NCBI GenBank assembly: GCA_950097015.1
Contig: CATNEN010000002.1
Location: 7,192,001 to 7,256,000 of the forward strand
DNA from: Macrostomum hystrix
Lineage: Eukaryota; Animalia; Platyhelminthes
Direction: 5' to 3'
DNA: 64,000 bases
Part shown: positions 1 through 57,130 of the stretch, piece by piece
How the letters are laid out: each line of letters opens with the position of its first letter
Numbering within the stretch: the first letter of the stretch is position 1
Position numbers and translations under genes: made by a program
The notes under the pieces: generated by a model
Database searches by the model: none
What the model was told of the DNA's origin: nothing
Seen by the model: only the letters and a program-made list of their open reading frames with translations

Positions 1-805
1 ATTAAGCTTAATAAAATTACGTGTACCGATTCCGGCCCAATTGTGATATTTTGGCGAAGGAATTGTGAAAATCGGTTAAGCCGTTCGGGAGCTAGTCGAT
101 TGCAAACAAGCAAGCAAGATTTTCATTTTTAGTATATTAGACTAGCTGCCTTCGCTACCCTCTGGGTAGCCTCCCTGTGAGTTCTTATCAGTACGCGCGT
201 GCGTTATCAAAACTGGCTCTGATGCAATCATTAAAATTGGCACTGGAGGCCTCACTGTGCACAAGCTGAAAACAAGAATGCATTAGAAAAGCCTATTTAA
301 AACTGTTTTTCGAATATTTAATCCCCTTGCCAATGGAATTAAGCTTAATAAAATTACGTGTACCGATTCCGGCCCATTTGTGATCTTTTGGCGAAGGAAT
401 TGCGAAAATCGGTTGAGCCGTTCGGGAGCTAGTCGATTGCAAACAAGCAAGCAAGATTTTCATTTTTAGTATATTAGACTAGCTGCCTTCGCTACCCTCT
501 GGGTAGCCTCACTGGAGTTCTTATCAGTTCGTTATCAAAACTGGCTCTGATGCAATCATTAAAGTTGGCACTGGAGCCTCACTGTGCACAAGCTGAAAAC
601 AAGAATGCATTAGAAAAGCCTATTTAAAACTGTTTTTCGAATATTTAATCCCCTTGGCAATGGAATTAACCTTAATAAAAATACGTGTACCGATTCCGGC
701 CCATTTGTGATCTTTTGGCGAAGGAATTGCGAAAATCGGTTGAGCCGTTCGGGAGCTAGTCGATTGCAAACAAGCAAGCAAGATTTTCATTTTTAGTATA
801 TTAGA
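1..805 (-). mobile_element. Tandem ~330-bp non-autonomous Helitron-like units (family A); complete units 142-478 and 479-805, first unit cut by window edge
   Basis: On the minus strand each unit starts TCTAATATACTAAAAATG, has a (CTTG)n microsatellite, and ends GCTACCC-AGA-GGGTAGC hairpin + GAAGGCAG + CTAG; junctions read CTAG|TC. Confidence 0.85.
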
Positions 806-899
806 CTAGCATGTTTTGCCCCCCTTCGGGGAGCAGAAATACTTTTAATTCGTCTAGTATATACTTTTTAGCAGCTGAATTTACAGCTTTTTATAGCTA

Positions 900-1770
900 C
901 AATGAACCCCCAGTTGACAATGATCCCCCAGCCCCAGTTGATGATGATCCCCAAGTTGATGATGATCCCCTAGTTGACAATTCTCCCAGTTGACAATGAT
1001 CCCCCAGTTGACAATGAACCCCCAGTTGACAATGAACCCCCAGTTAACAAAGATCCCCCAGTTGACAATGATCCCCCAGTTGACAATGATCCCCCAGTTG
1101 ACAATGATCCCACAGTTGACAATGATCCCCCAGTTGACAAAGATCCCCAGTTCACAATGATCCCCCAGTTGTCAATGATCCCACAGTTGAAAATGATCCC
1201 CCAGTTGACAATGATCCCCCAGTTGACAATGATCCCCCAGTTAACAATGATCCCCAAGTTAACAAAGATCCCCCAGTTCACAATGATCCCCCAGTTGATG
1301 ATGACTCCCCATTGATGATGATCCCCAGTTAACAATGTTCCTCCAGTTGACAATGTTCCCCCAGTTGACAATGATCCCCCAGTTGATGATGATCACCCAG
1401 TTGACAATGATCCCCCAGTTGACAATGATCCCCCAGTTGACAATGATCCCCCTGTTGACAATGATCCCCCAGTTGATAATGATCCCGCGCGTTGACAATG
1501 ATCCCACAGTTGACAATGATCCCCCAGTTGACAATGATCCCCCAGTTGACAAAGATCCCCAGTTCACAATGATCCCCCAGTTGATGATGATCCCCCAGTT
1601 GAAAATGATCCCCCATGCAGTTGACAATGATCCCCCAGTTGAAAATGATCCCCCAGTTGACAATGATCCCCCAGTTGACAATGATCCCCCAGTTGACAAT
1701 GATCCCCCAGTTTACCATGATCCCCCAGTTCACCATGATCCCCATTTTGATGATGACTCCCCAGTTGACG
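900..1770. repeat. 18-bp minisatellite (GTTGACAATGATCCCCCA)n
   Basis: Directly visible tandem monomers with point variants; further blocks at 15345-16076, 17356-18087, 19780-20511 and 36172-37772. Confidence 0.97.
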
Positions 1771-1784
1771 TTGATTTTTCAAAC

Positions 1785-2785
1785 GCTGGGTTAGCCAAGA
1801 TTCAAACTCAGGTTTCGCCATGTTTTAAACCCTGGTGGGCTATGATTCAAACTCTCGTTTTGCCATGATTCAAACTCTGGTTTAGCCATGATTCAAACGC
1901 TGGGTTAGCCATGATTGAAACTCGGTTTTTGCCATGATTCAAACTCTGGTTTAGCCATGATTCAGACTCTAGTTTAGCCATGATTCAGACTCTGGTTTAG
2001 CCATGATTCAGACTCTGGTTTAGCCATGATTCAGACTCTGGTTTAGCCATGATTCAGACTCTGGTTTAGCCATGATTCAGACTCTGGTGTAGCCATGATT
2101 CAAGATCTGGTTTAGCCATGATTCAGACTCTAGTTTAGCCATGATTCAAGATCTGGTTTAGCCATGATTCAGACTCTAGTTTAGCCATGATTCAGACTCT
2201 GGTTTAGCCATGATTCAGACTCTATTTTAGCCATGATTCAGACTCTGGTTTAGCCATGATTCAGACTCTAGTTTAGCCATGATTCAGACTCTAGTTTAGC
2301 CATGATTCAGACTCTGGTTTAGCCATGATTCAGACTCTATTTTAGCCATGATTCAGACTATGGTTTAGCCATGATTCAGACTCTATTTTAGCCATGATTC
2401 AGACTATGGTTTAGCCATGATTCAGACTCTGGTTTAGCCATGATTCAGACTCTGGTTTAGCCATGATTCAGACTCTGGTTTAGCCATGATTTAAACGATG
2501 GTTTAGCCATGATTCAAACTCTGGTTCGCTATGATTCAAACGATGCTTTAGCCATGATTCAAACAATGGTTTAGCCATGATTTAAACAATGGTTTAGCCA
2601 TGATTCAAACAATGGTTTAGCCATGATTCAAACAATGGTTTAGCCATGATTTAAACGATGGTTTAGCCATGATTCAAACAATGGTTTAGCCATGATTCAA
2701 ACGATGGTTTAGCCATGATTCAAACTCTGGTTTAGCCATGATTCAAACTCTGGTTTAGCCATGATTCAGACTCTGGTTTAGCTAT
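1785..2785. repeat. 23-bp satellite I (GCCATGATTCAGACTCTGGTTTA)n, left part, interrupted by the CACTA element
   Basis: Tandem monomers; array resumes at 14551 after the AT TSD. Confidence 0.97.
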
Positions 2786-3378
2786 CCCAGTGGGAAAAAA
2801 CGTTCCGCCTGACGTTCCGGCGACCGTCCGTTTTTGGTCGGGCGACCGGATTTTAGGCGGTATTAATGTCCGCACGCCTGGCGCGCCGGGCGGGCCCGCC
2901 CCGGGCGACTGTTATATATATTTTTAGCTTAAAATCCTTTCAATCTACTGTTAGTAGCATGTGATGAAACTCCATGAGTCTGATTTCTAGCTAGCTGCTT
3001 CCCATTCCCGCTTTCCGCTCGCTACCCGCTTATTGCTCCCGCTCCTCGCTACCCGCTCCTGTCCCACTCATTCCCGTGTTACTACGCGTTGAATCGATTA
3101 TTCCAGTACGTCACATCAGCAAGATAATGGAACTAGTATACCCTGCATGAGAGGCGTAAATATTTTATTTAAGCTAGCATTTTCGATTGTATTTACGAGC
3201 GTATAATTTAAGTAGTAAAAAATTACATTTAATAATATGGAACATGCAACATAAAGTTATGACACGCAAGACATGGCATAAATTAAAGTAAAAAGTGCGA
3301 AGCTCAAATGTAAAATTAAGTTAAGTAATGCATTTTTCAGTTCAGGGGATTTCTGTTTCAGCATAATAAATAAAGTTT

Positions 3379-5625
3379 TCAGCTGGACGGATCTTCGTCC
3401 GAAGAATCCGAAATAAGTGCCACCATTGTTCGGCGCCTCTTGGCTTGCGGTTGCAGCTCGCTGCGTGGCTGCTGCACGTCTGCTAAAGCAGCTGGCGAAG
3501 CTACCAGACTGAGGCGCTGACGCGGCTCGGGTCTCGGCGTCAGGTGCAGTCTGCAGCCCGTTGCTGCCGGCGACTCTGCGAGACCGATTGATGAAGCTGC
3601 AGCCGCCTGCTCAGGCGTGCCGGTGTGAAGACGAGCCGGATGGCCATCAGTTCGACGCCTGTGCACTCTCGGCGTTGATCGATCGCTGGCATGCTTTAGA
3701 ACGGCCTTAATGGCCTCCTTGACATCATGCTTCAGCGTCTGCGGCGGCTTCTCCGGTGGCTTGTAGAAGCCTTTAGCAGTGTCTGATGTGTTAAATGAAG
3801 TAAGGTAATACCTTATAAACAAATTTACGTTTTTTGCATGCGTAAAAACTCAGCTACTTGCTAGTAGTTTGGTTTAAAAATACAGTAGCGGCATGAAATT
3901 TGAATTTTGGTACTCTTTAATTCTTCAAAGTTGTTTAAGGGTTGCTACTTGCAGTAGGATATAAAGAATAGTAGATGATGTGAAATATGTTATTCGTATA
4001 CGGCACTTCTTATCTGAATTTTCCCGAAGGCAATACTGATTCTTACCAAAAAAAATGTCCAAGAAATTCTGCCGAACGCTGAGCTGTTTCTCACTGAGCT
4101 CGGTCGGAACTTCTCGCAAAGCCCTAGCAGGCATTCCAAGTCCCGTCAGGTTAACCCCGCACTGGAAGGCTGGCGTCATTGCGGTGTCCAACATCATCCG
4201 CACGGAGGAGCGTAAATCTGCACCCTGGCAGCAGTGCAGCAACGCCACCTGTTCGGGTGAAACAGGTGGGAGAGCAAATTACTACGATTATGTGTGCTCC
4301 TATTGTACCTGAGAACAATCTGAGTACCTCAGCGTCAAATCTGTTCGACACACCCTATTGCACCACATATAATGAGCTCACCAATTCGCGAATGTTCTCC
4401 AAGGGAGATATCGCAAAGTGGACATAATCCTGCCAACTTGAAATTGGCCAGAATCTTGTCTGCGGCTCGCCTGCCGTGTCCGGCTCGCCTACCGAAGCGG
4501 CAGCTGAAGCAGGCGACGGCGCAACTGAGGCAGCGGATAATCTGGCGTAAGCCGCTCGCAAGCCAGCCATTTCCTGACGCAGAGCCGACTGCTCCCTTTC
4601 CCTGGTGGCGTGCTCGTCTGTCAGTTTACGCAGCAGGCAGAGCAACAGAAAGCTGTGGCCCTCTGAACTCGTCAGGCTGCAGTTCATCGCAGCCTGGGCT
4701 TTCTCTCCTAGCCGACGGATGACCTCGTTACCCGGCCAATTCAGGAAAGCCAGATCGGCTCGGGGTTCGAACTCCATCGCGTCGCCCGCTGCAGTTGCTG
4801 CTGCTGCTGCTGCCGCCGCATTCGGGGACTTCGGCCGGCAAGACGCGTCGGCGTCGCTGTCCGCCGCAGCTGCAGCCCCTGTCGGCGACTCCGGCCGACA
4901 AGACGCATCAGCGCCACTGTCCGCTGCAGCCACGGATACAGCCACCGTCCGAGCATCCTCATCGTCCGATGACTGCAACTCGTCGTCGTCCTCAGGGGCA
5001 AGTTGCGCCTCCGTAGTTGCGCGGCCTCGCTGAAAATTGATGAGCGACTTGGTCCGACAGGTCTCTTGAACGTCGGAGTCCTCGACCGCTGCCGTCGCTT
5101 TGGTGGCGCGCCCGTTTACAAAGGCATCGCTGTCGAGATCGGACTGCTCAGACTTCTCACCCTGCGCAATCGAGAAAGCAATTTGCAAATACTTTAGGAT
5201 CGTATATAGATAGATAGATAGATAAATGCAGGAATTTATTTTCCGTTTATTATATAACGAACCTGTGCCTGATACAGACGGCGGGCTAGCTTGGCATCCG
5301 AGGGCTCAAAGACTCGCGGCCTCAGCTTAATGAGAATGTCTGGTATGCTCATTCTCTTCTGCAGCAGTTTCCGGACGTAGCGGATACTGACCTCCGTGTC
5401 CGTCGGCACCAACTGGTTTGGATCTTCCAGGTGCACCTGGATGATGATCGCGTTGTACGCTACGCCTTCGTAGGTCGCGTCGCACATCCAGGCTTCCTGG
5501 GCGTCTTTTTTCTCCAACCACTTCTCCCGCGACCATCCCTCCATTTCGCTGGGAAGGAAGACGTTGGTCTCAGGAACTTCCACAACCTGTCTGTCCTTTT
5601 TGAAAATTACGATGAATTTCATCAT
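3379..5625 (-). CDS. Spliced accessory gene of the CACTA element, DUF4806-like; exons 5625-5263, 5191-4382, 4248-4047, 3782-3379 (592 aa predicted)
   Basis: All three introns are GT-AG with matching phases (CAG|GTTCGT, TTG|GTGAGC, TTG|GTAAGA); total 1779 nt, open; joined protein has IRELVALLHCCQGADLRSSVRMML...NLTG...EAIKAVLKHASDR resembling DUF4806 proteins (family call from recalled motif only). Confidence 0.75.
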
Positions 5626-5944
5626 GTCGTAGACTCTCAGTTGAGTTTGGCTTCTGAATAGTTAGGACACTATATTCATATACCTGAGCTCAACTCAACT
5701 CAACGATCTATTACTCAGCCCCCCCCCGATGCAGGTTGCTCATTGGCTGCCTGGGATTCACGTTTGGGATCACTTCCTCAGCCGCTCCCTGCACATTCCC
5801 CAACTCCGTCTCCCTCTCCGTCAACCCTCTTTCTTTTTTAATTTTTCGTTATCACATTTTCTTACTACAGAATGTAATGCTATAATGCTATTATTTCTAC
5901 TATAATACTGGTACAATGACTATTCCTTTAATAGAAAAATCATA

Positions 5945-7945
5945 TTGACCCCTATAGATAGAATGTATACAAGCAGGCAAAAGCGGCGGCGTGTTGAGCA
6001 GCTGACTGATCTTCTGTTTAGTACCGACCGCAGGGCTAATACAAATGCAAAGTGCACTGTGAATGCTGTGAGCCAGGTAGAGTCGCAAGAGGCTGAAGAC
6101 GTGCTGCAGGAAGTGGCTACTGAATCACTCCACCACCCTGTTTGCGTTGACGAGCTGCCAGAGGAGCCTCTGACAAGCGGCTTAGAGCAAGAAGAGGCCA
6201 TTTTCGACTCCGAACTCCGCGTGGAAGATCAGCGGAGCATGGAAACGAAGCTGCTCGACCTTCTCGTTGTCTTCTTCGTTCTCTACAATGTCCCTCGGGA
6301 GGGCATTGACTTCCTTTGCCAAGGACTCAACAAGCTTGGAGTACCGGCCCCGAAGTCTGCTTACGTGATTCGGAGTCGTCTGGAGGAAAGCAAGTCCGGA
6401 GGAAAGGAGCAGAAGATGTCCATGGTGAAAGTTGGTGAGGGGTACTTCAGGTACATTTCTATAGTCTCTAATCTCAAATGGCTATTCTCGAAAGGTCTCT
6501 TAAGACTCACAACACCAGATCCCTTGAGTTCAACGGACGAATATAAAGTCTACAGCTTGAATGCTTTTGTGAACTCTGACGGCCTCCCAACTTTTAAGTC
6601 GTCCAACTTTGGTCTATGGCCTCTTCTGATGAGGATTCCCGAGGTCTTCGCCAGGCCCTTTGCTATTGGACTTTATGCTGGCAAAGGCAAAGCCCCACTT
6701 GACGACTATCTTCGCGAATTCTGCAAGGAGGCCACAGAACTGTCAAGACAGCCGGTGAAAATATGCGACTCGATTGGCATAATGTTTAAAAGCTTTTGCT
6801 TCGTTGTGGACACCCCCGCTCGATCGTACCTGTGTAGAATCGCAGGACACACTGCTTACGATGGGTGCAGCTATTGCCGAGCCCATGGGCTTTATGTTCA
6901 GGGCAGAGTGACTTTTCCTACGAAGGTCGAAGCACCTAGAAGTGCAAAAGAATACCGCGCAGGACAGGAAACCAATCAGGCGAATAGAAGACTGTCGCCA
7001 TTGCTGAATGTTCCGAATGTCGACTTTGTCAAGTCCTTTCCGGTCGAGGTTCAGCATGCAGTTTTTTTGGGAACCGTTCGCCGACTGTTTACTTATCTGT
7101 TTGACAAGGATGAGGGCCGGAACTGCAAGATTAAGCCAAAAAAGATTAGTCTTCTGTCTGACAGGATAGAGTCGATCGCCAGCTGGACTCCTTCAGAATT
7201 TCAGCGGAGACCCAGGAGATTGGACAAGGACCTCAAGTTTCTGAAGGCCAGTGAATACAGGCAATGGGTTCTGTACCTAGCACCTGTACTTTTTAAGGGC
7301 GTTCTGCCTGACTACCTGTTCGACAATTTCATGCTGCTGCACTACGCACTCTTCGTGTACTCCTCACCTCGCCACTCAAAGCGCTTCATTCAGGCAAAGA
7401 CTTCAATTGAGGTTTTCGTGCAGCAATGTGCCACTTACTTCGGGCAGGTGTCCATTAGCTATAATATGCATGCACTTCTGCACCTGGATGACTTCGTCCG
7501 GCACTATGGAGGACTGGCAGACATCACGACATTTCCCTTCGAAAATTACCTAGGCGGACTCAAACGGCGCATCAAAGTTACGCGACACATGGCTGCCCAT
7601 TCAGTGAAACAGATTCTGCTGCTTCGAGAACTAACTACAGACGATGCAGTACGCCGGATCCAGTTTTCCAACAAGAAGCGGGACAACTGCTGCTATATTA
7701 GCAAGAAAGTCGTTTTAATCGACAACATCAGTGGAGCTGTGGCGGAGGGGAGAGTCCTGCAACCTGTGGAGAACGTGTACACGTATCCCTACAAATCTTT
7801 GACTTTGGGCATTGGTGTCTACCGCCTGACTGAAGAGTCTGCAACTGGTAGTCCGACCCACAAGTGCTGGCTTCTGCCGCATGTCGACTGTGCGAGGTCT
7901 GATCTCTTCTTCGTGATTCCGCTGGCTGGAGAAGATGGATATTAG
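5945..7945 (+). CDS. EnSpm/CACTA-family DDE transposase, 666 aa, uninterrupted
   Basis: Motifs SDGLPTFKSS..LWP, VDTPAR...GHTAYDGCSYC, HAVFLGTVRRL, KASEYRQWVLY, NMHALLHL, FPFENY characteristic of EnSpm-like transposases. Confidence 0.92.
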   Translation: MTPIDRMYTSRQKRRRVEQLTDLLFSTDRRANTNAKCTVNAVSQVESQEAEDVLQEVATESLHHPVCVDELPEEPLTSGLEQEEAIFDSELRVEDQRSMETKLLDLLVVFFVLYNVPREGIDFLCQGLNKLGVPAPKSAYVIRSRLEESKSGGKEQKMSMVKVGEGYFRYISIVSNLKWLFSKGLLRLTTPDPLSSTDEYKVYSLNAFVNSDGLPTFKSSNFGLWPLLMRIPEVFARPFAIGLYAGKGKAPLDDYLREFCKEATELSRQPVKICDSIGIMFKSFCFVVDTPARSYLCRIAGHTAYDGCSYCRAHGLYVQGRVTFPTKVEAPRSAKEYRAGQETNQANRRLSPLLNVPNVDFVKSFPVEVQHAVFLGTVRRLFTYLFDKDEGRNCKIKPKKISLLSDRIESIASWTPSEFQRRPRRLDKDLKFLKASEYRQWVLYLAPVLFKGVLPDYLFDNFMLLHYALFVYSSPRHSKRFIQAKTSIEVFVQQCATYFGQVSISYNMHALLHLDDFVRHYGGLADITTFPFENYLGGLKRRIKVTRHMAAHSVKQILLLRELTTDDAVRRIQFSNKKRDNCCYISKKVVLIDNISGAVAEGRVLQPVENVYTYPYKSLTLGIGVYRLTEESATGSPTHKCWLLPHVDCARSDLFFVIPLAGEDGY

Positions 7946-9094
7946 GTGAGATTTCGAAGCAGTTATTTCGAAAATATAATAGACTGAGAGTGATAAGTTG
8001 ATACGTTGCAGTAGACAGAGAAGTAGAGGGAGAGTAATGTACTCGTATATTTATATCCAATTTTCTGAGAGTGAGATTATGTAGAGAAAGCTAGGGGGAA
8101 GAGGCGATGAAGATGGAGAGAGGAATAGACTAGCAGATTAAGTAGATCTGCTGATTCGGGGGAATCGAATGTCAAGGTACCCTAAATAAAATAAATGAAG
8201 TAGATTGAGCAAGTAAGGTTACAATCCTCTCGCAACTCCTTATCTTCAATGCAGGAAGTGTTCCGACTCCTCTGCTCTTACTGCCGAATCTGCAGCTGTC
8301 TGGTGCTCGGGAATTGTTTGGGAACATTCAGTCATTGATAAACCGATTTGTGTCTGATGCCATGCCGTGTCTTGTACGGTGACATTATAATGACATACAA
8401 TACCCACGTGCTTTTGCACATTTTGCACATTGTCTTAGCTGAATGCGATGGAAATTTGTTTGCTAGGAATACCCGTTTAGCGCAATAGGTATTTCGATTA
8501 TTTATATTTGAATGTTTCTTCTTTTATGCTTGCTACGGAATATCTCATGAAGTGAAATATATTTGTATATGTATATTTTTAGGAGAGAGTTAGCGTTTTC
8601 AATTCTGCATTTTTTCGAGCTTGAACGACCTGAGTCTGGGTTATGAATAATTCATTTCTCTGTTGTTCGTAAAACAAATACAAGACTATTAATACCAGCT
8701 ATTTCATTTTCGAAGCCTTTCATTTGCACGAAGTGTCAGTTGTTTGTTGCCACCTGCATTCAGTATTTAGAATCAAAAGCAAGATATATATGGAAACCTA
8801 AAGACGAACTAACTCTACATCTGTTCATGGGGCTATGGGATGGCATACGGGCATACAGATAAGATATGGGCTGTGCTCCGCTACCTCAGACACTCAATCA
8901 TCCTGTCATATACAGTTTTATGACAGGAAGACTGTTTTAACCGCAGGCCCTTATCGAAGAATATATGGTCTGTTGCGCGGAACTCGTGAGTAAGTAAGCA
9001 ACTGGACACGGGGGGACAATGCTTCTCCCTCCGTCTTTCCCCCCCCCAGTTGGGGGTATTAATAGTCTTGTTCATTTATTATTCATATAACCCC

Positions 9095-9763
9095 TGGGGC
9101 TTGGGGGTCTTTGTACTCCCGGGGGTCCGCAGTCTGTGGTTGCAAACAAAGGCCAATATTTTTATCTGCTTTTGCCAGGGAAGATTATTCGCTTGCTTTG
9201 TTTATCGATGGAGCTCTGAGTGTAGAAACTGGTGAGACAACTCCCCGCGAAACCCCCATTTTCCGGGCCACAGACCAAAGACCAAGGAATAGAATTAGAC
9301 TGCGCATGTAGCATGGCCTGCCTGTGCGTGTTTTGGGACAAAAAACCAATGCAAAAGATGGTCCCCGCTCTTCCCCTCAACTGGTCAATAGTGTGTGTGT
9401 TAGTGGAGTTCCTTATTGTAAATGTATCTAAAAAGGCGCATTTCCAACTAATTGGGTTGATCACTTCCAAACCTGATTATCAGAAACGAAACTGCATTTT
9501 TATTCCTTGGTCTGTTAGGGCTGACTGGGAAATTGAAAATTTTTCGATAGGAAAAAAGGCAAATTGGCGCTAAAACCAAAAAACAATAGCTCTGTGAACT
9601 TTTTATGCAAAGGCTTGCGATGGTATGAATGTCTCTCTCTTTCCCTTCTCTTTGTTCTGTCACGAAAATATTTACCGGAGAGACACAAGCCACATTTTAA
9701 ATACATGGCCTAAAGGTGTTGAAAAAAGTCTAAAAAATATGCTAGGATCTACGATAACTATTA
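9095..9763. repeat. 669-bp direct repeat, left copy (apparent target duplication of the LINE)
   Basis: Matches 12061-12729 (offset 2966) with no difference found by eye; four ORF-track peptides are identical in both copies. Confidence 0.95.
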
Positions 9764-12060
9764 TTATTATTATTATTATTATTAAAACGCGCACGCCATC
9801 TATGGGTGCTGATTTTTTTATATATATATTTTTTAACAACACATTTAAATGAACAACGAAAAGCAACATAAAAAGCGAAGTTAAGTAGGAATCAAATATC
9901 GAGCTGGGAAGGGAAAGCAAAGGTATTAAAAATAAGAGCAGTAAAAACACAAGGGACGCCAGGGATAAAACAAATTATGAAATATCTATTGTTGAATGCT
10001 AGTAAAATCTCGTAGTCTCAGGGCAGCTGTTCCCTTATTTTAGATATTTCTATGATGTATTTTGCTAAAGCTTCAGCGGTTTCCCTATCGTCTTGAGCCA
10101 TTATGTAGTTAGATTTTTCTTCTGCTGTTAAGGATATGAAATTGGGGGTTTTCCCAGAAACTTCCGTCTCAAATTTCGAACGTACTGCGCTATACTTATT
10201 CCAAGTGCACTTAAAAAGGAAGTGGACCTCGTTTTCAACTTCTGTTTTGCACTTACTACATAATCTATTTGCATACGGAATTTTCGGTCTCGCAGTTCGC
10301 AATGTTTCGCAAGCTAGCTTATGGTTTCCTAGTCTAAACGAGGCTATGGTACGTCTCCACTCCGGGTTGTATATTTGTTGTAAATATTTTTCGGCTGAAT
10401 AATATTGCTTGAAGGAGTAATAGAAGTGACTTAGCTTGCTTGAGTTCTGTGTCCTTTGTCTCCAATGGGTATCGAACTGAGAAACGAAATTTTTCCTGTG
10501 GTTTCCAATTGCTTTTGCAGGACTAATGCCTCTGCAGTTCAGCATAACCTCATTGTTGGTCTTTGCTTTGATTCCAACATCACTGTATGTTTGGTCCGCC
10601 AATAACTTGGAAATTATGGAGTCCGGCCGGCTTGTTATGGAGGCCCAGTACGAAATGCTTCTTTTCTGGATGTTGTATAATAAAGGCAATCTGCCTAACT
10701 CCGAGCGGGCCCCGTTGCCATCCGTATTTTGGCTGACTTGTAGTATGGCTTTACAGCACCTGATGTTTACTCTTTCAAAAAGACAGCGGTCCCAAGGACC
10801 CAGGTTCCACGAGACAAAAGCCCCCCAGGCCTCAGAGGCGTACAGAGCTATGCTTTCTATCATTGCTGTGCAGTACAGCATGAGCTGATTGTATCTGACC
10901 GCCCCATGGCTGGCTAATTTCCTTAAGAGAAGAATAGGATATCCACATTTTTTGTTAATCTCTGTGGCATGGGAATCCACGGTTCCTTTAGCATTGATGT
11001 GAAAGCCAAGATATTTCCATTCTTTGACGCTATCTAACAGTTGTCCCTGCAGAAATAGTTTGTTAGCCGTCTTTGATGGGTCAGGGCAACAGCTAATAAC
11101 CTTAGTTTTTTGCATATTGATTTCTAGCTTGTGGCTCTGACAAAATTCTGACACTTTATCGAGGCCCTTCTGCAACTCTCGAGGATTCTCTCCAAAGATC
11201 ACTAAATCATCGCAGTATAGCAAGTTGTTGATTTGTTCATCTTTAATGAAGGTGTCGCTGCGAAATGAATCCCTTAGCATTGTGCTCAAAGGATCTATAT
11301 AGAGTGAGAAGAGTAGAGGGGATAGGGGACAGCCTTGTCTTACTCCATTTGTTATGCTCCTTGCCTTAGTTGCTTGGCCATCTGAGATCTTCAGTTGGAA
11401 TTTAGCTCCTGAGTACATGCTTTGTATTGCTTCGATTATTTCTGGGCTGACCTTTAACTCCCTAAGTCGTTGGAAAAGTGTTGGATGGTGGACCATGTCA
11501 AATGCGCTTTTTAAGTCAAAGAACACTAAGTGAAATGGCCTTTTGCGACGCTTTTTGTTGTGGATCAACGTCAAGAGAGTGGCAATGTGGTCTGAAGTTC
11601 GGTAGCCCTTTCTATTTCCTATTTGACTGGCTGAAAGCAAGTCGAGGGTGCGAATATGAGTTTCTAGCTTTTCATAGATAAGTGAGGCAAACAGGCGAGC
11701 CAGGGCAGGCAGCACGCTTATGGGTCTGTAGTTTTTGGGGTCACTACGGGAACCCTTTTTATAAATCGGTTTGATTAGGGCATTTGACCACTGTGCAGGA
11801 GTCTGGCCGAGTCTTACGCTTGCGTTAAAAAGCTTCAGAAGTACGGGTTTTAGCTTCTCTTGTCCGTAGATAATGTGCTCATTTGTTATACCATCTATTC
11901 CTGCAGCCTTTCTTCTCTTTAGCTTTTTAACTGCTCTATCGAGATCTACGCAGCTAATTAAATCTTCGGGACTAACTGCTTCATCTGTGCGATGCGGCTG
12001 GGTTCCCGAAGAAGGATGTGCGTTAAACACTTTGGTTAGGTTGTCCGCGATGTCAGCGAT
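9761..12060 (-). mobile_element. 5'-truncated non-LTR retrotransposon (RTEX-like or CR1/L2-group) with (TAA)8 tail
   Basis: (TTA)8 at 9761-9784 on plus; ~230-bp 3' UTR; RT ORF truncated at 12060; clade assignment tentative. Confidence 0.88.
10018..12060 (-). CDS. LINE ORF2 fragment: reverse transcriptase plus C-terminal Cys/His motif; endonuclease lost by truncation
   Basis: KAAGIDGI, YRPISVL, FFDLKSAFD, GVRQGCPLSPLLF, YCDD, WKYLG, CSKC...EVHFLFKC; the first 17 codons of the track ORF (12061-12111) come from the duplicated flank. Confidence 0.92.
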   Translation of the reverse strand: MADIADNLTKVFNAHPSSGTQPHRTDEAVSPEDLISCVDLDRAVKKLKRRKAAGIDGITNEHIIYGQEKLKPVLLKLFNASVRLGQTPAQWSNALIKPIYKKGSRSDPKNYRPISVLPALARLFASLIYEKLETHIRTLDLLSASQIGNRKGYRTSDHIATLLTLIHNKKRRKRPFHLVFFDLKSAFDMVHHPTLFQRLRELKVSPEIIEAIQSMYSGAKFQLKISDGQATKARSITNGVRQGCPLSPLLFSLYIDPLSTMLRDSFRSDTFIKDEQINNLLYCDDLVIFGENPRELQKGLDKVSEFCQSHKLEINMQKTKVISCCPDPSKTANKLFLQGQLLDSVKEWKYLGFHINAKGTVDSHATEINKKCGYPILLLRKLASHGAVRYNQLMLYCTAMIESIALYASEAWGAFVSWNLGPWDRCLFERVNIRCCKAILQVSQNTDGNGARSELGRLPLLYNIQKRSISYWASITSRPDSIISKLLADQTYSDVGIKAKTNNEVMLNCRGISPAKAIGNHRKNFVSQFDTHWRQRTQNSSKLSHFYYSFKQYYSAEKYLQQIYNPEWRRTIASFRLGNHKLACETLRTARPKIPYANRLCSKCKTEVENEVHFLFKCTWNKYSAVRSKFETEVSGKTPNFISLTAEEKSNYIMAQDDRETAEALAKYIIEISKIREQLP

Positions 12061-12729
12061 TGGGGCTTGGGGGTCTTTGTACTCCCGGGGGTCCGCAGTC
12101 TGTGGTTGCAAACAAAGGCCAATATTTTTATCTGCTTTTGCCAGGGAAGATTATTCGCTTGCTTTGTTTATCGATGGAGCTCTGAGTGTAGAAACTGGTG
12201 AGACAACTCCCCGCGAAACCCCCATTTTCCGGGCCACAGACCAAAGACCAAGGAATAGAATTAGACTGCGCATGTAGCATGGCCTGCCTGTGCGTGTTTT
12301 GGGACAAAAAACCAATGCAAAAGATGGTCCCCGCTCTTCCCCTCAACTGGTCAATAGTGTGTGTGTTAGTGGAGTTCCTTATTGTAAATGTATCTAAAAA
12401 GGCGCATTTCCAACTAATTGGGTTGATCACTTCCAAACCTGATTATCAGAAACGAAACTGCATTTTTATTCCTTGGTCTGTTAGGGCTGACTGGGAAATT
12501 GAAAATTTTTCGATAGGAAAAAAGGCAAATTGGCGCTAAAACCAAAAAACAATAGCTCTGTGAACTTTTTATGCAAAGGCTTGCGATGGTATGAATGTCT
12601 CTCTCTTTCCCTTCTCTTTGTTCTGTCACGAAAATATTTACCGGAGAGACACAAGCCACATTTTAAATACATGGCCTAAAGGTGTTGAAAAAAGTCTAAA
12701 AAATATGCTAGGATCTACGATAACTATTA
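12061..12729. repeat. 669-bp direct repeat, right copy
   Basis: Begins exactly at the LINE truncation point (TGGGGCTTGGGGGTC) and ends ...ACGATAACTATTA. Confidence 0.95.
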
Positions 12730-14550
12730 AGTCCATATCCATGTCTCATTCCCTTACCAAACCCAGACATGACTATCACTGGAACCGCGTACAGTTAAGA
12801 AAACAAGTCTTGGTTTCTCTCTTACTCGTTCTGAGCGCTTGTGATAAGAATCATATCCATGACTCTACGGCTCGTAGATAACATTTGACATGAATTTCTA
12901 ACTCAGTGTGTGTGTACGCTCTCGAAATGCACAAGCATACAGTGGAGCGAGTGGACTCACTCTGACTCACTGCCCAGTGCCCCACTCAAAAGTTTTTGCC
13001 CTTGCTCCTACCCTCTGCTCTGATTCCGTATCCTCTCAAAAACAACGAGAACAATTTCATACCACATGTTTGTTTTCCTCTCAGCGGCTAAATAAGAGAG
13101 AGAGAGAGATACTAATATTTTTGGACCCCCATGCACATAGATTTTTATACTTTGAGCTGTAGTGGCAAACTAGCTCTACAATTAGGTAAGGCGAACTGGC
13201 GTACAGATAAAACATGTCTGTGTTCCGATCCCAGACACTCACTCATATATCAATATCCGTGCCGTCCTGGAAGTCAGCACCGCACAGATCGGATCAGTAC
13301 ATACCCCGACAATTTATCCCAGGAAGTCAGGATCAGAATTAGGAACGCATCTAAACTCTAAACAATAAAGAAAAGAAAATTATATGCTAGCTAAATTTTA
13401 TCCATGTTAAGTTGCTTAAATTTCTCACTATGGATGTTTGCAAAAGGGCACTTGGGGTACTAGTATATCATTTGGTTCCGAAGCTAGTCACAGGTAATTC
13501 AGCCCATTCCACGGACTCGTGCACAAACACACACAGATACGTAGCTTGTACGCAGGCAGGCAGGCACCAACTCAATAAGTGTGTACATCTGCCCCTAATT
13601 TTTTGAGTCAGGCATTATATATCATTATTAAATAGGTTCTTTCAACGGCAAGAGAATGAGGGAGAGAGAATCAAGAAGAGATAATCTGGGAAAAATAATC
13701 ACGAAAAGAGACTCAGGGAGAGAGAATCAAGAAGCTAGAATTAGAAGCAATTACGTAGAATCCGGATATTTAGGCATTTTTTCGTGTACTCGACTTGTTC
13801 CAGCAGTTGAAACAAAAAATGCAGCAGATGTCTTAGCATTTCTATAAACTATACACTCTACTTATCAGTAGCGAGTTTCTCTATATGTTCCTTTCAATTT
13901 ATTCAGCAGAAAGTTAAGTTTGCGAAGGTATACGCTTTATACGCAGCTAGGAACACGCATTCGCGCAGCAATTTTATTAATTCATGTAAAAACATTGGAG
14001 GAAGCTAAAAGCAAGAGGGGAATAATCGTACTGTACTTGCTTCCTATTACTTAGTCACGTGTAAATTCACTTACATGCTTTCACGCCTAATCCACACCCG
14101 GCCGACCCCTCCGAGGTTTTACTCACTACTTTTAGTAGAGTATCAAGACATACGGCCAAAAATGTCCGGGTTAAAGATTTAGGACGCCCCTGGCAACCAA
14201 ATGGCGACCGTGACGCGACCGCTTCAAAGTGCACAGAATCTTCAGTTGAAGCTGATCTAGGCCTTGAATATTTTTTTTAGGGTCAATGATGAACTCCAGA
14301 CGGTTTTCAAAACAAGAAATCCATTTTTTTATCATGACAAGTCAGCCGCCCCGAGCGACCTTAAGGCGACCGTGAGGCGACCGAATGAAAGTGCATAAGA
14401 GCTTGGGAAAAACATCCAAAGTACCATTTTTTTTACTGAAAATGCTCTTTAGATTGCACTTAAAGTACTCTGAGAACAAACTCCAAAAATATTTGGGCGA
14501 CCGTTTGGGCGGCGCCGCCCGCAGTCGCCCCCAGTTTTTTTCCCACTGGG

Positions 14551-17500
14551 ATGATTCAAACTCTGGTTTAGCCATGATTGAGACTCTGGTTTAGCCATGA
14601 TTGAGACTCTGGTTTAGCTATGATTCAGACTCTTGTTTAACCATGATTAAAACTCAGTTTTAGCAATGATTCGAACTCTGGTTTAGCAATGATTCAGAAT
14701 CTGGTTTAGCCATGATTCAGACTCTGGTTTAGCCATGATTCAAACAATGGTTTAGCCATGATTTAAACGATGGTTTAGCCATGATTCAAACTCTGGTTCG
14801 CTATGATTCAAACGATGCTTTAGCCATGATTCAAACAATGGTTTAGCCATGATTTAAACAATGGTTTAGCCATGATTCAAACAATGGTTTAGCCATGATT
14901 CAAACAATGGTTTAGCCATGATTTAAACGATGGTTTAGCCATGATTCAAACAATGGTTTAGCCATGATTCAAACGATGGTTTAGCCATGATTCAAACTCT
15001 GGTTTAGCCATGATTCAAACTCTGGTTTAGCCATGATTCAAACATTGGTTTAGCCATGATTTAAACTCTGGTTTAGCCATGATTCAAACTCTGGTTTAGC
15101 CATGATTCAAACTCTGGTTTAGCCATGATTCAAACGATGGTTTAGCCATGATTCACACTCTGGTTTAGCCATGATTCAAACTCTGGTTTAGCAATGATTC
15201 AAACTCTGGTTTAGCCATGATTGAGACTCTGGTTTAGCCATGATTCAGACTCTGGTTTAGCTATGATTCAAACTCTGGTTTAGTCATGATTCAGACTCTG
15301 GTTTAGCCATGATTCAGACTCTGGTTTAGCTATTTAGCTATTTGCCCAGTTAACAAAGATCCCCCAGTTGACAATGATCCCCCAGTTGACAATGATCCCC
15401 CAGTTGACAATGATCCCACAGTTGACAATGATCCCCCAGTTGACAAAGATCCCCAGTTCACAATGATCCCCCAGTTGTCAATGATCCCACAGTTGAAAAT
15501 GATCCCCCAGTTGACAATGATCCCCCAGTTAACAATGATCCCCCAGTTAACAATGATCCCCAAGTTAACAAAGATCCCCCAGTTCACAATGATCCCCCAG
15601 TTGATGATGACTCCCCATTGATGATGATCCCCAGTTAACAATGTTCCTCCAGTTGACAATGTTCCCCCAGTTGACAATGATCCCCCAGTTGATGATGATC
15701 ACCCAGTTGACAATGATCCCCCAGTTGACAATGATCCCCCAGTTGACAATGATCCCCCTGTTGACAATGATCCCCCAGTTGATAATGATCCCGCGCGTTG
15801 ACAATGATCCCACAGTTGACAATGATCCCCCAGTTGACAATGATCCCCCAGTTGACAAAGATCCCCAGTTCACAATGATCCCCCAGTTGATGATGATCCC
15901 CCAGTTGAAAATGATCCCCCATGCAGTTGACAATGATCCCCCAGTTGAAAATGATCCCCCAGTTGACAATGATCCCCCAGTTGACAATGATCCCCCAGTT
16001 GACAATGATCCCCCAGTTTACCATGATCCCCCAGTTCACCATGATCCCCATTTTGATGATGACTCCCCAGTTGACGTTGATTTTTCAAACGCTGGGTTAG
16101 CCAAGATTCAAACTCAGGTTTCGCCATGTTTTAAACCCTGGTGGGCTATGATTCAAACTCTCGTTTTGCCATGATTCAAACTCTGGTTTAGCCATGATTC
16201 AAACGCTGGGTTAGCCATGATTGAAACTCGGTTTTTGCCATGATTCAAACTCTGGTTTAGCCATGATTCAGACTCTAGTTTAGCCATGATTCAGACTCTG
16301 GTTTAGCCATGATTCAGACTCTGGTTTAGCCATGATTCAGACTCTGGTTTAGCCATGATTCAGACTCTGGTTTAGCCATGATTCAGACTCTGGTGTAGCC
16401 ATGATTCAAGATCTGGTTTAGCCATGATTCAGACTCTAGTTTAGCCATGATTCAAGATCTGGTTTAGCCATGATTCAGACTCTAGTTTAGCCATGATTCA
16501 GACTCTGGTTTAGCCATGATTCAGACTCTAGTTTAGCCATGATTCAGACTCTGGTTTAGCCATGATTCAGACTCTAGTTTAGCCATGATTCAGACTCTAG
16601 TTTAGCCATGATTGAGACTCTGGTTTAGCTATGATTCAGACTCTTGTTTAACCATGATTAAAACTCAGTTTTAGCAATGATTCGAACTCTGGTTTAGCAA
16701 TGATTCAGAATCTGGTTTAGCCATGATTCAGACTCTGGTTTAGCCATGATTCAAACAATGGTTTAGCCATGATTTAAACGATGGTTTAGCCATGATTCAA
16801 ACTCTGGTTCGCTATGATTCAAACGATGCTTTAGCCATGATTCAAACAATGGTTTAGCCATGATTTAAACAATGGTTTAGCCATGATTCAAACAATGGTT
16901 TAGCCATGATTCAAACAATGGTTTAGCCATGATTTAAACGATGGTTTAGCCATGATTCAAACAATGGTTTAGCCATGATTCAAACGATGGTTTAGCCATG
17001 ATTCAAACTCTGGTTTAGCCATGATTCAAACTCTGGTTTAGCCATGATTCAAACATTGGTTTAGCCATGATTTAAACGATGGTTTAGCCATGATTCAAAC
17101 TCTGGTTTAGCCATGATTCAAACTCTGGTTTAGCCATGATTCAAACGATGGTTTAGCCATGATTCACACTCTGGTTTAGCCATGATTCAAACTCTGGTTT
17201 AGCAATGATTCAAACTCTGGTTTAGCCATGATTGAGACTCTGGTTTAGCCATGATTCAGACTCTGGTTTAGCTATGATTCAAACTCTGGTTTAGTCATGA
17301 TTCAGACTCTGGTTTAGCCATGATTCAGACTCTGGTTTAGCTATTTAGCTATTTGCCCAGTTAACAAAGATCCCCCAGTTGACAATGATCCCCCAGTTGA
17401 CAATGATCCCCCAGTTGACAATGATCCCACAGTTGACAATGATCCCCCAGTTGACAAAGATCCCCAGTTCACAATGATCCCCCAGTTGTCAATGATCCCA

Positions 17501-20500
17501 CAGTTGAAAATGATCCCCCAGTTGACAATGATCCCCCAGTTAACAATGATCCCCCAGTTAACAATGATCCCCAAGTTAACAAAGATCCCCCAGTTCACAA
17601 TGATCCCCCAGTTGATGATGACTCCCCATTGATGATGATCCCCAGTTAACAATGTTCCTCCAGTTGACAATGTTCCCCCAGTTGACAATGATCCCCCAGT
17701 TGATGATGATCACCCAGTTGACAATGATCCCCCAGTTGACAATGATCCCCCAGTTGACAATGATCCCCCTGTTGACAATGATCCCCCAGTTGATAATGAT
17801 CCCGCGCGTTGACAATGATCCCACAGTTGACAATGATCCCCCAGTTGACAATGATCCCCCAGTTGACAAAGATCCCCAGTTCACAATGATCCCCCAGTTG
17901 ATGATGATCCCCCAGTTGAAAATGATCCCCCATGCAGTTGACAATGATCCCCCAGTTGAAAATGATCCCCCAGTTGACAATGATCCCCCAGTTGACAATG
18001 ATCCCCCAGTTGACAATGATCCCCCAGTTTACCATGATCCCCCAGTTCACCATGATCCCCATTTTGATGATGACTCCCCAGTTGACGTTGATTTTTCAAA
18101 CGCTGGGTTAGCCAAGATTCAAACTCAGGTTTCGCCATGTTTTAAACCCTGGTGGGCTATGATTCAAACTCTCGTTTTGCCATGATTCAAACTCTGGTTT
18201 AGCCATGATTCAAACGCTGGGTTAGCCATGATTGAAACTCGGTTTTTGCCATGATTCAAACTCTGGTTTAGCCATGATTCAAACGCTGGGTTAGCCATGA
18301 TTGAAACTCTGGTTTAGCCATGTTTCAAACTCTGGTTTAGCCATGATTTAGACGCTGGTTTAGCCATGATTTAGACTCTGGTTTAGCCATGATTCAAACT
18401 CTAGTTTAGCCATGATTCAGACTCTATTTTAGCCATGATTCAGACTCTAGTTTTGCGATGATTCAGACTCTAGTTTAGCCATGATTCAGACTCTGGTTTA
18501 GCCATGATTCAGACTCTGGTTTAGCCATGATTCAGACTCTGGTTTAGCCATGATTCAGACTCTGGTTTAGCCATGATTCAGACTCTGGTGTAGCCATGAT
18601 TCAAGATCTGGTTTAGCCATGATTCAGACTCTAGTTTAGCCATGATTCAAGATCTGGTTTAGCCATGATTCAGACTCTAGTTTAGCCATGATTCAGACTC
18701 TGGTTTAGCCATGATTCAGACTCTATTTTAGCCATGATTCAGACTCTGGTTTAGCCATGATTCAGACTCTAGTTTAGCCATGATTCAGACTCTAGTTTAG
18801 CCATGATTCAGACTCTGGTTTAGCCATGATTCAGACTCTATTTTAGCCATGATTCAGACTATGGTTTAGCCATGATTCAGACTCTATTTTAGCCATGATT
18901 CAGACTATGGTTTAGCCATGATTCAGACTCTGGTTTAGCCATGATTCAGACTCTGGTTTAGCCATGATTCAGACTCTGGTTTAGCCATGATTTAAACGAT
19001 GGTTTAGCCATGATTCAAACTCTGGTTCGCTATGATTCAAACGATGCTTTAGCCATGATTCAAACAATGGTTTAGCCATGATTTAAACAATGGTTTAGCC
19101 ATGATTCAAACAATGGTTTAGCCATGATTCAAACAATGGTTTAGCCATGATTTAAACGATGGTTTAGCCATGATTCAAACAATGGTTTAGCCATGATTCA
19201 AACGATGGTTTAGCCATGATTCAAACTCTGGTTTAGCCATGATTCAAACTCTGGTTTAGCCATGATTCAGACTCTGGTTTAGCTATGATTCAAACTCTGG
19301 TTTAGCCATGATTGAGACTCTGGTTTAGCCATGATTGAGACTCTGGTTTAGCTATGATTCAGACTCTTGTTTAACCATGATTAAAACTCAGTTTTAGCAA
19401 TGATTCGAACTCTGGTTTAGCAATGATTCAGAATCTGGTTTAGCCATGATTCAGACTCTGGTTTAGCCATGATTCAAACAATGGTTTAGCCATGATTTAA
19501 ACGATGGTTTAGCCATGATTCAAACTCTGGTTCGCTATGATTCAAACGATGCTTTAGCCATGATTCAAACAATGGTTTAGCCATGATTTAAACAATGGTT
19601 TAGCCATGATTCAAACAATGGTTTAGCCATGATTCAAACAATGGTTTAGCCATGATTTAAACGATGGTTTAGCCATGATTCAAACAATGGTTTAGCCATG
19701 ATTCAAACGATGGTTTAGCCATGATTCAGACTCTGGTTTAGCCATGATTCAGACTCTGGTTTAGCTATTTAGCTATTTGCCCAGTTAACAAAGATCCCCC
19801 AGTTGACAATGATCCCCCAGTTGACAATGATCCCCCAGTTGACAATGATCCCACAGTTGACAATGATCCCCCAGTTGACAAAGATCCCCAGTTCACAATG
19901 ATCCCCCAGTTGTCAATGATCCCACAGTTGAAAATGATCCCCCAGTTGACAATGATCCCCCAGTTAACAATGATCCCCCAGTTAACAATGATCCCCAAGT
20001 TAACAAAGATCCCCCAGTTCACAATGATCCCCCAGTTGATGATGACTCCCCATTGATGATGATCCCCAGTTAACAATGTTCCTCCAGTTGACAATGTTCC
20101 CCCAGTTGACAATGATCCCCCAGTTGATGATGATCACCCAGTTGACAATGATCCCCCAGTTGACAATGATCCCCCAGTTGACAATGATCCCCCTGTTGAC
20201 AATGATCCCCCAGTTGATAATGATCCCGCGCGTTGACAATGATCCCACAGTTGACAATGATCCCCCAGTTGACAATGATCCCCCAGTTGACAAAGATCCC
20301 CAGTTCACAATGATCCCCCAGTTGATGATGATCCCCCAGTTGAAAATGATCCCCCATGCAGTTGACAATGATCCCCCAGTTGAAAATGATCCCCCAGTTG
20401 ACAATGATCCCCCAGTTGACAATGATCCCCCAGTTGACAATGATCCCCCAGTTTACCATGATCCCCCAGTTCACCATGATCCCCATTTTGATGATGACTC

Positions 20501-54208: not shown

Positions 54209-57130
54209 TCAGGGTGGTCCGTCGGTCGATTCCGCCGCGCGATCTTCCTCGCCATAGGCTGGGAACAAATCAGCTCGGCCGGTATCCCGGAGGAAGTGGG
54301 CGAGCTGTGGGATGTTCTCGGGCGAGCAGGCTTCGGCAAGAGTCGGTGCCGGCCCGAGATGTTTTAGCCTAGCCCGGGTGAAGGGCGGGCAGTGGCAGAT
54401 GAAATGCTCGGCGTTTTCACGTCCGGAGCAGCAGAAGGGACACGTTTCCTCAGGCACGTGGCCTTGGAGGTAGCGGTGTCTGGTGAAGCAGCCATGTCCC
54501 GAAAGGGCCATAGTGACTGCTCTCAGGTCTCTGCGGTTAAGCCTGAGTAAGGCCTTACGCAGGTTACTAGAGGGGGTTGGCACCGCAGCCCTGGACTGGC
54601 GACAGTTCCGGGTGCTGGACCACCTCCTCCGGTGCTGTGTCTCCATCCAGCGGTTGATGCTGGAGTTGACAACAGAGGCGGGGATCGGGGACTCCGGGCC
54701 CGGGCCCATCAGGGAGCTGGCTGCTCCAGCCTTAGCAAGCTGGTCCGCCATCTCATTCCCTGTGAACCCGGCATGCCCAGGGATCCACAACAGCTCCACC
54801 CTGTTAGACTGTGCCAACCCGTTTAACTGGGTGTTGCAGTCCAAGGTGGTTCTGGAGCGAGAGGTGCAGCGACTGAGGGCCTTGAGGGCTGCTTGACTGT
54901 CGGAGTGAAAAAAGATCCTCCGACCAGCCAGCTGCCTCTGGCGCAGCTCAGCCGCACAGAAACTGATGGCGAGCACTTCGTTTTGGAAAACGCTAGAGCT
55001 CTTGCCACAGTATTGGGAGTGTGTCCAGAGGACCTCACCACCCGAGGCGACGCACACTCCGAATCCTGATTTACCGTTCATCAGAGAGCCGTCAGTGTAA
55101 CAGTGGACTGCCGGGTCATCCCAGCAGTCCTTTACCTCTTTACGAGGGAAGATGCTGACTTTGTACCTGTGGCTCCGGAGTAAAGTGGCCGGGGCCCCGT
55201 CCGAAAGGATGGTGAGCCCTCCGCACTCGCCCAGAGTTTTCAGGCAGAGGTCAGAGTGAGGCAGAAGGGAGCGCTTCGAGAAGGCTCGCGAATTCTGGAA
55301 GGAGACACCCGCATCAAGGAGACGACGGGTGGACTTTGCTGCTTCCCCCTTGACGAAAATGTCAATGGGTGTAGCGTTGAGGAAAGCATTCATGCCTTCG
55401 AAGGGAGTGGAGGGTGGGGCGCCCAGCGTCATACGACAGGCTCTGCCCTGCACCCTATATGGCGCCTCCAGGTTTTTCTGGATGCCCATGGCACTGGCCT
55501 AGATGAGGCCAGCGTATGCGACGGACGGTCTAATGATCGCCGTGTAAATCCACCAAAGGTTCTTGGGGGTTAGCCCCCAAGTGGTGCCCACGGCACGCCT
55601 GACTTGCTCCAGTATGGCCAGGGCCCTCTTGGCCTTTGTGGTGATGTGCGGGGTCCAGTTAAGCCTATGGTCTAGCACGAGACCAAGGCACCGGACCTGC
55701 TTTTCCATGGCAATATTCTTGCCATAGAGAGTCAGAGGCTTAATGGTCCAGAGCAGTTTGCTGGTAAACATAACCGCAACAGTCTTGGACTCAGAGAGTC
55801 GGAGCCCGCATTGGTCCGTCCAGCGCACCGCCCTGTTGATAAAGCCCTGGATGAGGTCTCTGGTGGTTTCCGCCGAGGGGCCCGCGCAGATGGCGGTCAC
55901 ATCGTCGGCATATCCCACCTTCAGGACTGGGTCAGGACGAGTGCTTTTCAGCAGCTCATCCATGACGAGATTCCACAGCAGTGGGGTGAGGACGCCGCCT
56001 TGGGGCCCTCCTTTTAGAACAGGTGCCGAGAGCAGCCTGCCTTCGAGGTGGGCCACCACGTGGCGATGCCGGATCATGTACATGACCCAGCGAACGAGGT
56101 GGGGGTGAGTGGCCCTGGAAACCAGGGCCTCCTCAAAAGCTTCGAAAACAACGTTATCGAAGGCCCCCTCAATGTCTAGGAAGACAGCCAGGGCAAAACC
56201 GCTGCCCAGCACTGCCTTCTCGAGAGTCTCCACGATGCAGTGGAGGGCGCTCTCCGTGGACCGGCCCGCCCGAAAGGCGTGCTGGTTTGGGGAGAGCGGG
56301 GCCCGCCCTAGCTCTACAGTAAGAAGGCGCCAGAGCACCAGTCTTTCCATGAGCTTGAGGCAGGTGGAAGTCAAGCTTATCGGGCGATAGGACTTGACCG
56401 AGCGATAGTCGCCTTTGGAGGGCTTCGGGATGAAGACGACCCGGGCTTCGTGCCACAGCGCTGGTACATAGCCCAGCACGATGCAGGCCCGTAGAAGTCT
56501 GCAGAGGAGATGGAGGAAGCGGCCATTTTTGACCGCTTCATGCAAAAAGGCCGGATAAATACCATCTGGCCCAGGTGCTTTGAAAGGGTTGAATGACTTT
56601 GCCGCGCGAACGATGCGGTCATTCGTGACGAGTGACTGAGCCAGGCCCTGACCTCCACGTGAGTGGTCGTCTGGGCCAAAGTGCGCCGGTACACTCGGGA
56701 AGAAATGCCCTAGCATAAGCTCGAGCGTTTCCTCCGGGCGCTCCGTGATCGAGCCGTCTGGCTTTTTGATCGATGAGAGCTTGGAGAAGCGGTCGTTGGT
56801 GAGCGCCTTTACCACGCGGGCCGTGGGCCGCGAGCCCTCAAGCCCTTCGCAGTATTGTTGCCACTTGTCCGCTTCTGCCCTTCTGACCCGGCCCTTAAAC
56901 TCATGGATGGCGCGAGTATAGGCCTCTTTGTCATCAGGGTCGTGCGAGGTTTTCAGCTTCCTCTGGAGAGCCTTAGCTCGGCGTCTCAGGACTCCTAGCT
57001 CGGGGTTCCACCAGGGGGCCGATTTTTTGCCTTTGTAGGCTTTGAGCGGGCAAGCCATTTCGTAGGCCTCTGTGATGGCGCCGCCCAGCAGGGCAGCCAC
57101 TCCATCTAGGTCCTGCGTGGTTGCCATGGC
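54209..57130 (-). pseudogene. LINE ORF2 distal part: RT, RNase H and C-terminal Cys/His motif; one in-frame TAG at 55499-55501
   Basis: KAPGPDGI, YRPISLTS, FLDIEGAFD, GPQGGVLTPLLWN, YADD; [33 protein letters not shown]; CPFC...EHFICHC; the two track ORFs are in the same frame. Confidence 0.92.

Follow-up and report, generated by a model that had tools for sequence, protein, structure and literature searches.

Long duplications of target DNA are known from insertions of the human L1 element. In HeLa cells duplications of more than 100 bp make up ≤10% of the recovered inserts, and in NER-deficient cells they form the majority, with a median length of 1.5 kb and the longest at 5.3 kb (PMC5223499). 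L1 target duplications of up to 1.6 kb were found in NER-proficient (XPD-complemented) cells, and the authors proposed that the large duplications result from a distant, unrelated second nick, or from ends arising in replication or repair (PMC5223499). At the junctions of L1 in clones and in cancers, tandem duplications of 1-10 kb have been 'regarded as large TSDs' (bioRxiv 10.1101/2024.12.14.628481), and extremely long duplications have been tied specifically to 5′-truncated L1 insertions (PMC2912911).

The locus analyzed here has the same general organization, i.e. a 5′-truncated LINE lying between direct target duplications longer than 100 bp. It differs from the human L1 cases in being a natural, germline-fixed insertion in a flatworm, and in that a paralogue retains the sequence exactly as it was before the insertion. 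The element itself is also unlike human L1; the flatworm family has a (TAA)n tail where L1 has poly(A), and normally duplicates 0-8 bp of target, as opposed to 5-30 bp.

The window, which is the whole stretch of 64,000 nucleotides that was analyzed (G000:C2:7192001-7256000), was compared with itself. It contains a repeat of 669 bp with 0 mismatches (9095-9763 = 12061-12729, an offset of 2966 bp). Similarity is lost at once outside both ends of this block, and the outer flanks are unrelated. An exact repeat of this length is far beyond chance. The 2297 bp between the two blocks comprise a (TAA)n tail and a 5′-truncated non-LTR retrotransposon on the minus strand. This confirms the layout put forward in the initial annotation, of one block, TTA repeats with a minus-strand LINE, and the same block again, with no difference between its copies. 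The features of the locus are as follows.

2786-14550, plus strand: host TIR DNA transposon, 99.97-100% identical to G000:C1:19314694-19323492
5945-7945, plus strand: ORF of 666 aa in the host element, candidate transposase of the CACTA/Mirage/Chapaev type from its ESM-Atlas neighbours
9095-9763, no strand assigned: target-site duplication, copy at the 3′ tail of the LINE, an exact 669-bp match to 12061-12729
9761-9763, no strand assigned: TTA microhomology between the target end and the (TAA)n tail of the LINE, from comparison with the empty site
9764-9784, minus strand: (TAA)7 tail of the LINE (TTA on the plus strand), read in the sequence
9785-12060, minus strand: body of the 5′-truncated non-LTR retrotransposon, 100% identical to several other copies
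9785-10017, minus strand: 3′ UTR of the LINE, 233 bp between tail and ORF
10018-12060, minus strand: LINE ORF, 680 aa, uninterrupted, with its stop codon at 10018-10020
10996-11760, minus strand: reverse-transcriptase domain, residues 101-355 of the truncated ORF (Pfam RVT_1, E 7e-43)
12061-12069, no strand assigned: 9-nt microhomology (TGGGGCTTG) between the LINE at its truncated end and the beginning of the target block, from other LINE copies
12061-12729, no strand assigned: target-site duplication, copy at the 5′ end of the LINE, an exact match to 9095-9763

The LINE lies within a larger element, a second copy of which is found at C1:19314694-19323492. This is collinear with window positions 2786-9763 plus 12061-14550, with just 2 substitutions in 9,468 aligned bp (2 in the 6978 bp on the left and 0 in the 2490 bp on the right). 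The sole difference in length between the two copies is 2966 bp, corresponding to the LINE (2297 bp) plus one block (669 bp). The C1 copy contains one block and no LINE, and in view of its near-identity with the window copy it therefore serves as the empty site. The single block is what had been predicted for a copy of the host element free of the LINE.

The homology extends on both sides precisely to 15-bp terminal inverted repeats (CCCAGTGGGAAAAAA) and no further; the flanks beyond the window and C1 copies are unrelated to each other. These are therefore two paralogous copies of an 8.8-kb TIR DNA transposon, which has a length of 8,799 bp when free of the insertion and of 11,765 bp in the window, and is embedded in a 23-bp satellite. 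The unrelated outer flanks also rule out that the C1 copy is an allelic haplotig. Both outer flanks of the insertion are collinear with the empty-site copy, which rules out a 3′ or 5′ transduction. With 2 substitutions between the copies and intact TIRs, the host transposon is young and probably still mobile.

The block occurs three times in the 220-Mb genome (42 contigs), as the two window copies and at C1:19321003-19321671, and all three are 100% identical. In a whole-genome search none of these 3 occurrences was found beside any other LINE copy, and a genome search with the junction between the LINE 5′ end and the block matched the window locus only. This excludes the block as a terminal repeat of the LINE itself, a possibility that the initial annotation had raised against its own reading. 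The block abuts both ends of the LINE directly and is single at the empty site, and this is a feature of a TPRT target-site duplication.

Fixed natural LINE insertions with duplications of hundreds of base pairs are seldom documented alongside the exact pre-insertion sequence. Here the near-identical paralogue provides that sequence, so that both junctions, i.e. the TTA primer overlap and the 9-nt annealing point, are resolved to the single base. The sequence of the empty site around the 3′ junction is ...CTATTA|AGTCC, while the window has ...CTATTA followed by seven more TTA units. The TTA units thus number 8 with the shared unit at 9761-9763 included, or 7 (9764-9784) without it. The TTA overlap that had been noted at the tail junction is therefore real, and the suggestion that first-strand synthesis was primed at this TTA/TAA microhomology fits the sequence.

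The 5′ junction requires a small revision. The second block had been described as starting exactly at the truncation point of the LINE, but the match to the LINE runs 9 nt further. When the reverse complement of 11861-12100 was used as the query, other LINE copies were 100% identical from query position 32, which is 9 nt into the block, and some copies aligned from position 29, i.e. 12 nt beyond 12060. Since at least 25 other LINE copies match into 12061-12069, the LINE and the target share a 9-nt microhomology at this junction. The bases that are ambiguous at the two junctions place the length of the duplicated target at 657-669 bp, compared with the usual length of a target-site duplication of less than ~30 bp.

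A microhomology of 9 nt at a random junction has a probability of ~4e-6. Within the 700 bp to the left of the nick there are 8 9-mers shared by LINE and target. The site used cannot have been the first available to the growing cDNA, because 7 other shared 9-mers lie nearer the tail. This abundance of shared 9-mers, together with the use of one that was not the earliest, points to opportunistic annealing of the end of the cDNA to exposed target. The far junction looks to have been set by annealing of the cDNA, and not necessarily by a precise second cut. Two routes had been offered in the initial annotation, namely cleavage of the second strand 669 bp away, or template switching or strand displacement, and it is the latter that gains weight from the 9-nt microhomology.

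We think it likely that the locus results from a very recent TPRT insertion of a 5′-truncated LINE into the DNA transposon, in which 657-669 bp were duplicated by a one-off aberrant resolution. The state before insertion, with one block and no LINE, is seen directly in the C1 copy, and the microhomologies at both junctions are likewise seen in the sequences. In the mechanism that we propose the plus strand of the original site would be nicked after position 9763, and we infer that this nick was endonuclease dependent. At the nick, base pairing between the TTA end and the (UAA)n at the tail of the LINE RNA could then prime the synthesis of ~2.3 kb of cDNA. The 3′ end of the cDNA (...TGGGGCTTG) would anneal to its complement in the minus strand where the block begins, and its extension would copy the block once more as far as the nick. 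As for the minus strand, the product is compatible with a cut or an existing interruption ~669 bp away, and also with no cut at all. If the minus strand were never cut a 3-kb loop would be formed, to be fixed at the next round of replication, while the separation of two nicks 669 bp apart would need active unwinding or replication.

Microhomology-mediated attachment of the 5′ end of truncated L1 elements has reportedly been described by Zingler et al. and by Gilbert et al. in 2005, the latter as cited in PMC2912911. The window insertion is similar in that the junction between the LINE 5′ end and the target falls on bases common to both. It is unlike these in the extent of the microhomology, which is 9 nt where that of L1 is said to be 1-4 nt, and in having its annealing point 669 bp from the primer nick.

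The Drosophila I factor ends in TAA repeats. The window LINE resembles this and other LINEs with simple-repeat tails in its (TAA)n tail and in priming on a matching target end, a likeness that does not amount to a clade assignment. No RNase H domain was found in the LINE ORF using Pfam, and we note this as a difference from the Drosophila I factor group. The median target duplication of I elements in flies is ~12 bp (PMC8090852).

The reading frame of the window LINE is open to 12060, and then by chance on to 12111. Residues 35-355 align with residues 453-773 of human L1 ORF2p (E 4e-31), so that ~420 N-terminal residues, including any endonuclease, are missing from this copy. The best solved relatives of the reverse transcriptase are L1 ORF2p and R2 proteins. 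The ORF ends ~65 residues past a CCHC motif, which is too short for a C-terminal restriction-like endonuclease; because there is no room for such a domain, the family is likely to be APE-type, by elimination. Genome scans with PF03372 and PF14529 (150 scored matches each) gave matches in other LINE families only, and none beside the long copies of this one. We also observed that the genome holds thousands of young LINE copies.

A search with the 3′ 516 bp of the element found more than 200 candidate copies of the family in the genome, many of them 100% identical. All of the family copies that were retrieved (30/30) end in GCGCGTTT(TAA)n, and are 5′ truncated at differing lengths. The simple-repeat tail placed right at the junction and the variable 5′ truncation among copies are both features of a LINE. 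Judged by its sequence, the window insert belongs to a young and abundant family, of which it is an ordinary copy. Both junctions could be read in 12 other copies, with lengths of 542 to 1462 nt. Longer copies are also present; one (L062) is 2011 nt in length, 17 exceed 2037 nt, and at least 25 reach further 5′ than the window copy.

In the 12 short copies, read directly, the two flanks share no direct repeat over 0.6-1.5 kb; the sole apparent exception sits in satellite, where flank matches that are 80-92% identical are uninformative. Leaving out the satellite copy, the best shared words adjacent to the junctions are 5-8 nt in the remaining 11. The mean length of such words is 6.2 nt for true pairs of flanks, compared with 5.1 nt for mismatched pairs. 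The normal insertions of the family are thus accompanied by tiny duplications or by none at all, i.e. target-site duplications of 0-8 bp.

That the ordinary copies carry little or no duplication may also speak for a process in which the endonuclease played no part at the window locus. The LINE cDNA could have been captured during repair, through synthesis-dependent strand annealing, of a break or gap such as might be left by excision of the host transposon, where it would bridge two repair ends that overlapped by 669 bp within that transposon. A free 3′ end at the TTA would have served as the primer of the cDNA, which would have been joined through the 9-nt microhomology. A stagger of 669 bp would then not be required, microhomology is present at both junctions, and the DNA transposon that was hit is very young, probably mobile and equipped with intact TIRs. 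Yet L1 insertions made independently of the endonuclease usually have no tail junction, and are accompanied by deletions rather than duplications, whereas the full tail is present in the window copy, and we regard this origin as unlikely.

TPRT at an endonuclease-dependent nick remains our preferred explanation. The 100% identity of the two blocks might be expected if a false local duplication had been introduced by assembly around a heterozygous LINE insertion. But this would have to invent one of the junctions, and each of them bears a signature of retrotransposition, the tail lying on TTA and the truncation on the 9-nt microhomology. Moreover a 669-bp repeat with its copies 3 kb apart falls well inside single long reads, and the assembly of the genome into 42 contigs is taken to indicate that long reads were used. 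Because an artefact would have to create a junction with the hallmarks of retrotransposition, we consider this very improbable.

The duplication in the window could also be a property of the LINE family, and this was examined further using six of its long copies (L039, L040, L042, L043, L044 and L046). A genome search with their 1.47-kb downstream flanks revealed no second copy of the flank nearby, with a detection limit of ~30 bp for L039, L040 and L042 and of ~70 bp for L043, L044 and L046. Taken with the 12 copies read directly, a long target duplication is present in 0/18 other members of the family. Likewise no further long duplication flanking a LINE emerged when the window, and 70 kb of C1, were each compared with themselves. 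The event in the window is thus an outlier for its family and not a habit. The idea that the LINE regularly makes duplications of hundreds of base pairs, which had been put forward earlier in conditional form as a retrotransposon that routinely duplicates host DNA, is scarcely credible given that 0/18.

The outcome observed at this locus is rare, and is already known from human L1; the flatworm insertion adds a clean, naturally occurring case from another LINE lineage and another phylum. Knowledge of LINE mechanisms is not changed by it. The junction data do support annealing of the cDNA, rather than the endonuclease of the element, as setting the position of the far junction. We think it rather doubtful that long target duplications by LINEs are unusually frequent in this flatworm. 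If they were, one possible cause would be that the LINEs, or the repair system, often finish by microhomology annealing far from the primer nick. In that event the LINEs would be a regular source of short tandem duplications, exons included, and the situation in the flatworm would resemble that of L1 in NER-deficient human cells.

Lastly we consider the nature of the host transposon. Its 666-aa ORF gave no Pfam match even at E 10. The nearest ESM-Atlas clusters, with scores of 0.92-0.98, carry Transposase_21, DUF1258 or Plavaka. The identification of the host element as CACTA is at this stage only a lead. Termini of the CACTA type are CACTA/CACTG, and the TIR of the host element (CCCAGTGGGAAAAAA) contains CAGTG but does not begin with CACT. 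The target duplication made by CACTA-type elements is 2-4 bp in length. Only AT is common to both outer flanks of the host copy in the window, and at the C1 copy the duplication of the host element itself is CATC (4 bp), as proven by an uninterrupted paralogous site.

The DNA transposon with terminal inverted repeats (TIRs) that carries the LINE is present in two copies, one in the window and one, free of the LINE, on contig C1. The two differ by 2 substitutions, and their surroundings are as follows.

Window 2786-14550 and G000:C1:19314694-19323492 (loci L032/L036): host TIR DNA transposon, 8.8 kb, two copies.
Window 1-2782 and 14551-20000: arrays built from units of 23 bp and 18 bp, on both sides of the host transposon.
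G000:C1:19307511-19314694 (loci L035/L032): direct repeats measuring 3,029 bp and 1,585 bp; their period is 4,155 bp and their identity 99.6%.
Window 5945-7945, plus strand: 666-aa ORF of the host element.
Window 54209-57397, minus strand: second non-LTR element, unrelated to the LINE studied here, in sequence with a high GC content of about 58%.

On C1 the transposon lies within the second unit of the direct repeat. It is flanked by a 4-bp duplication, CATC, and this is proven by the uninterrupted paralogous site located 4.2 kb upstream. The window copy is bordered by the arrays on both sides and was therefore inserted in the 23-bp array; within this satellite its two flanks have AT alone in common.

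The 666-aa ORF gave no match in a Pfam search, even at an E value of 10. Its neighbours according to a protein language model are arthropod proteins, some of which carry Transposase_21, DUF1258 or Plavaka, and the ORF may encode a divergent animal transposase of the CMC type, for which it is a candidate.

Ordinary insertions of the LINE family, of which 30 copies (L038-L067) were retrieved, are flanked by duplications of 0-8 bp. These barely exceed the chance level of 5 nt that was obtained with mismatched flanks as a control, so second-strand processing in this family may be imprecise in general. The genome contains four copies, 100% identical, of the 1.47-kb downstream flank of one long copy, L043 (G000:C11:4469479, C1:15658611, C1:23300961 and C12:1278171); this flank is part of another very young repeat family.

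In the second non-LTR element of the window, neighbouring ORFs contain an RVT_1 domain (E = 3.5e-29) and an RNase_H domain (E = 1.3e-13), and the reverse transcriptase of this element shares 25% identity with that of the studied LINE. Dozens of genomic loci contain uninterrupted reading frames of 1238, 1245, 1273 or 1287 aa, with identical scores for the endonuclease domain. The Macrostomum hystrix genome appears to harbour several LINE families that are active at present.
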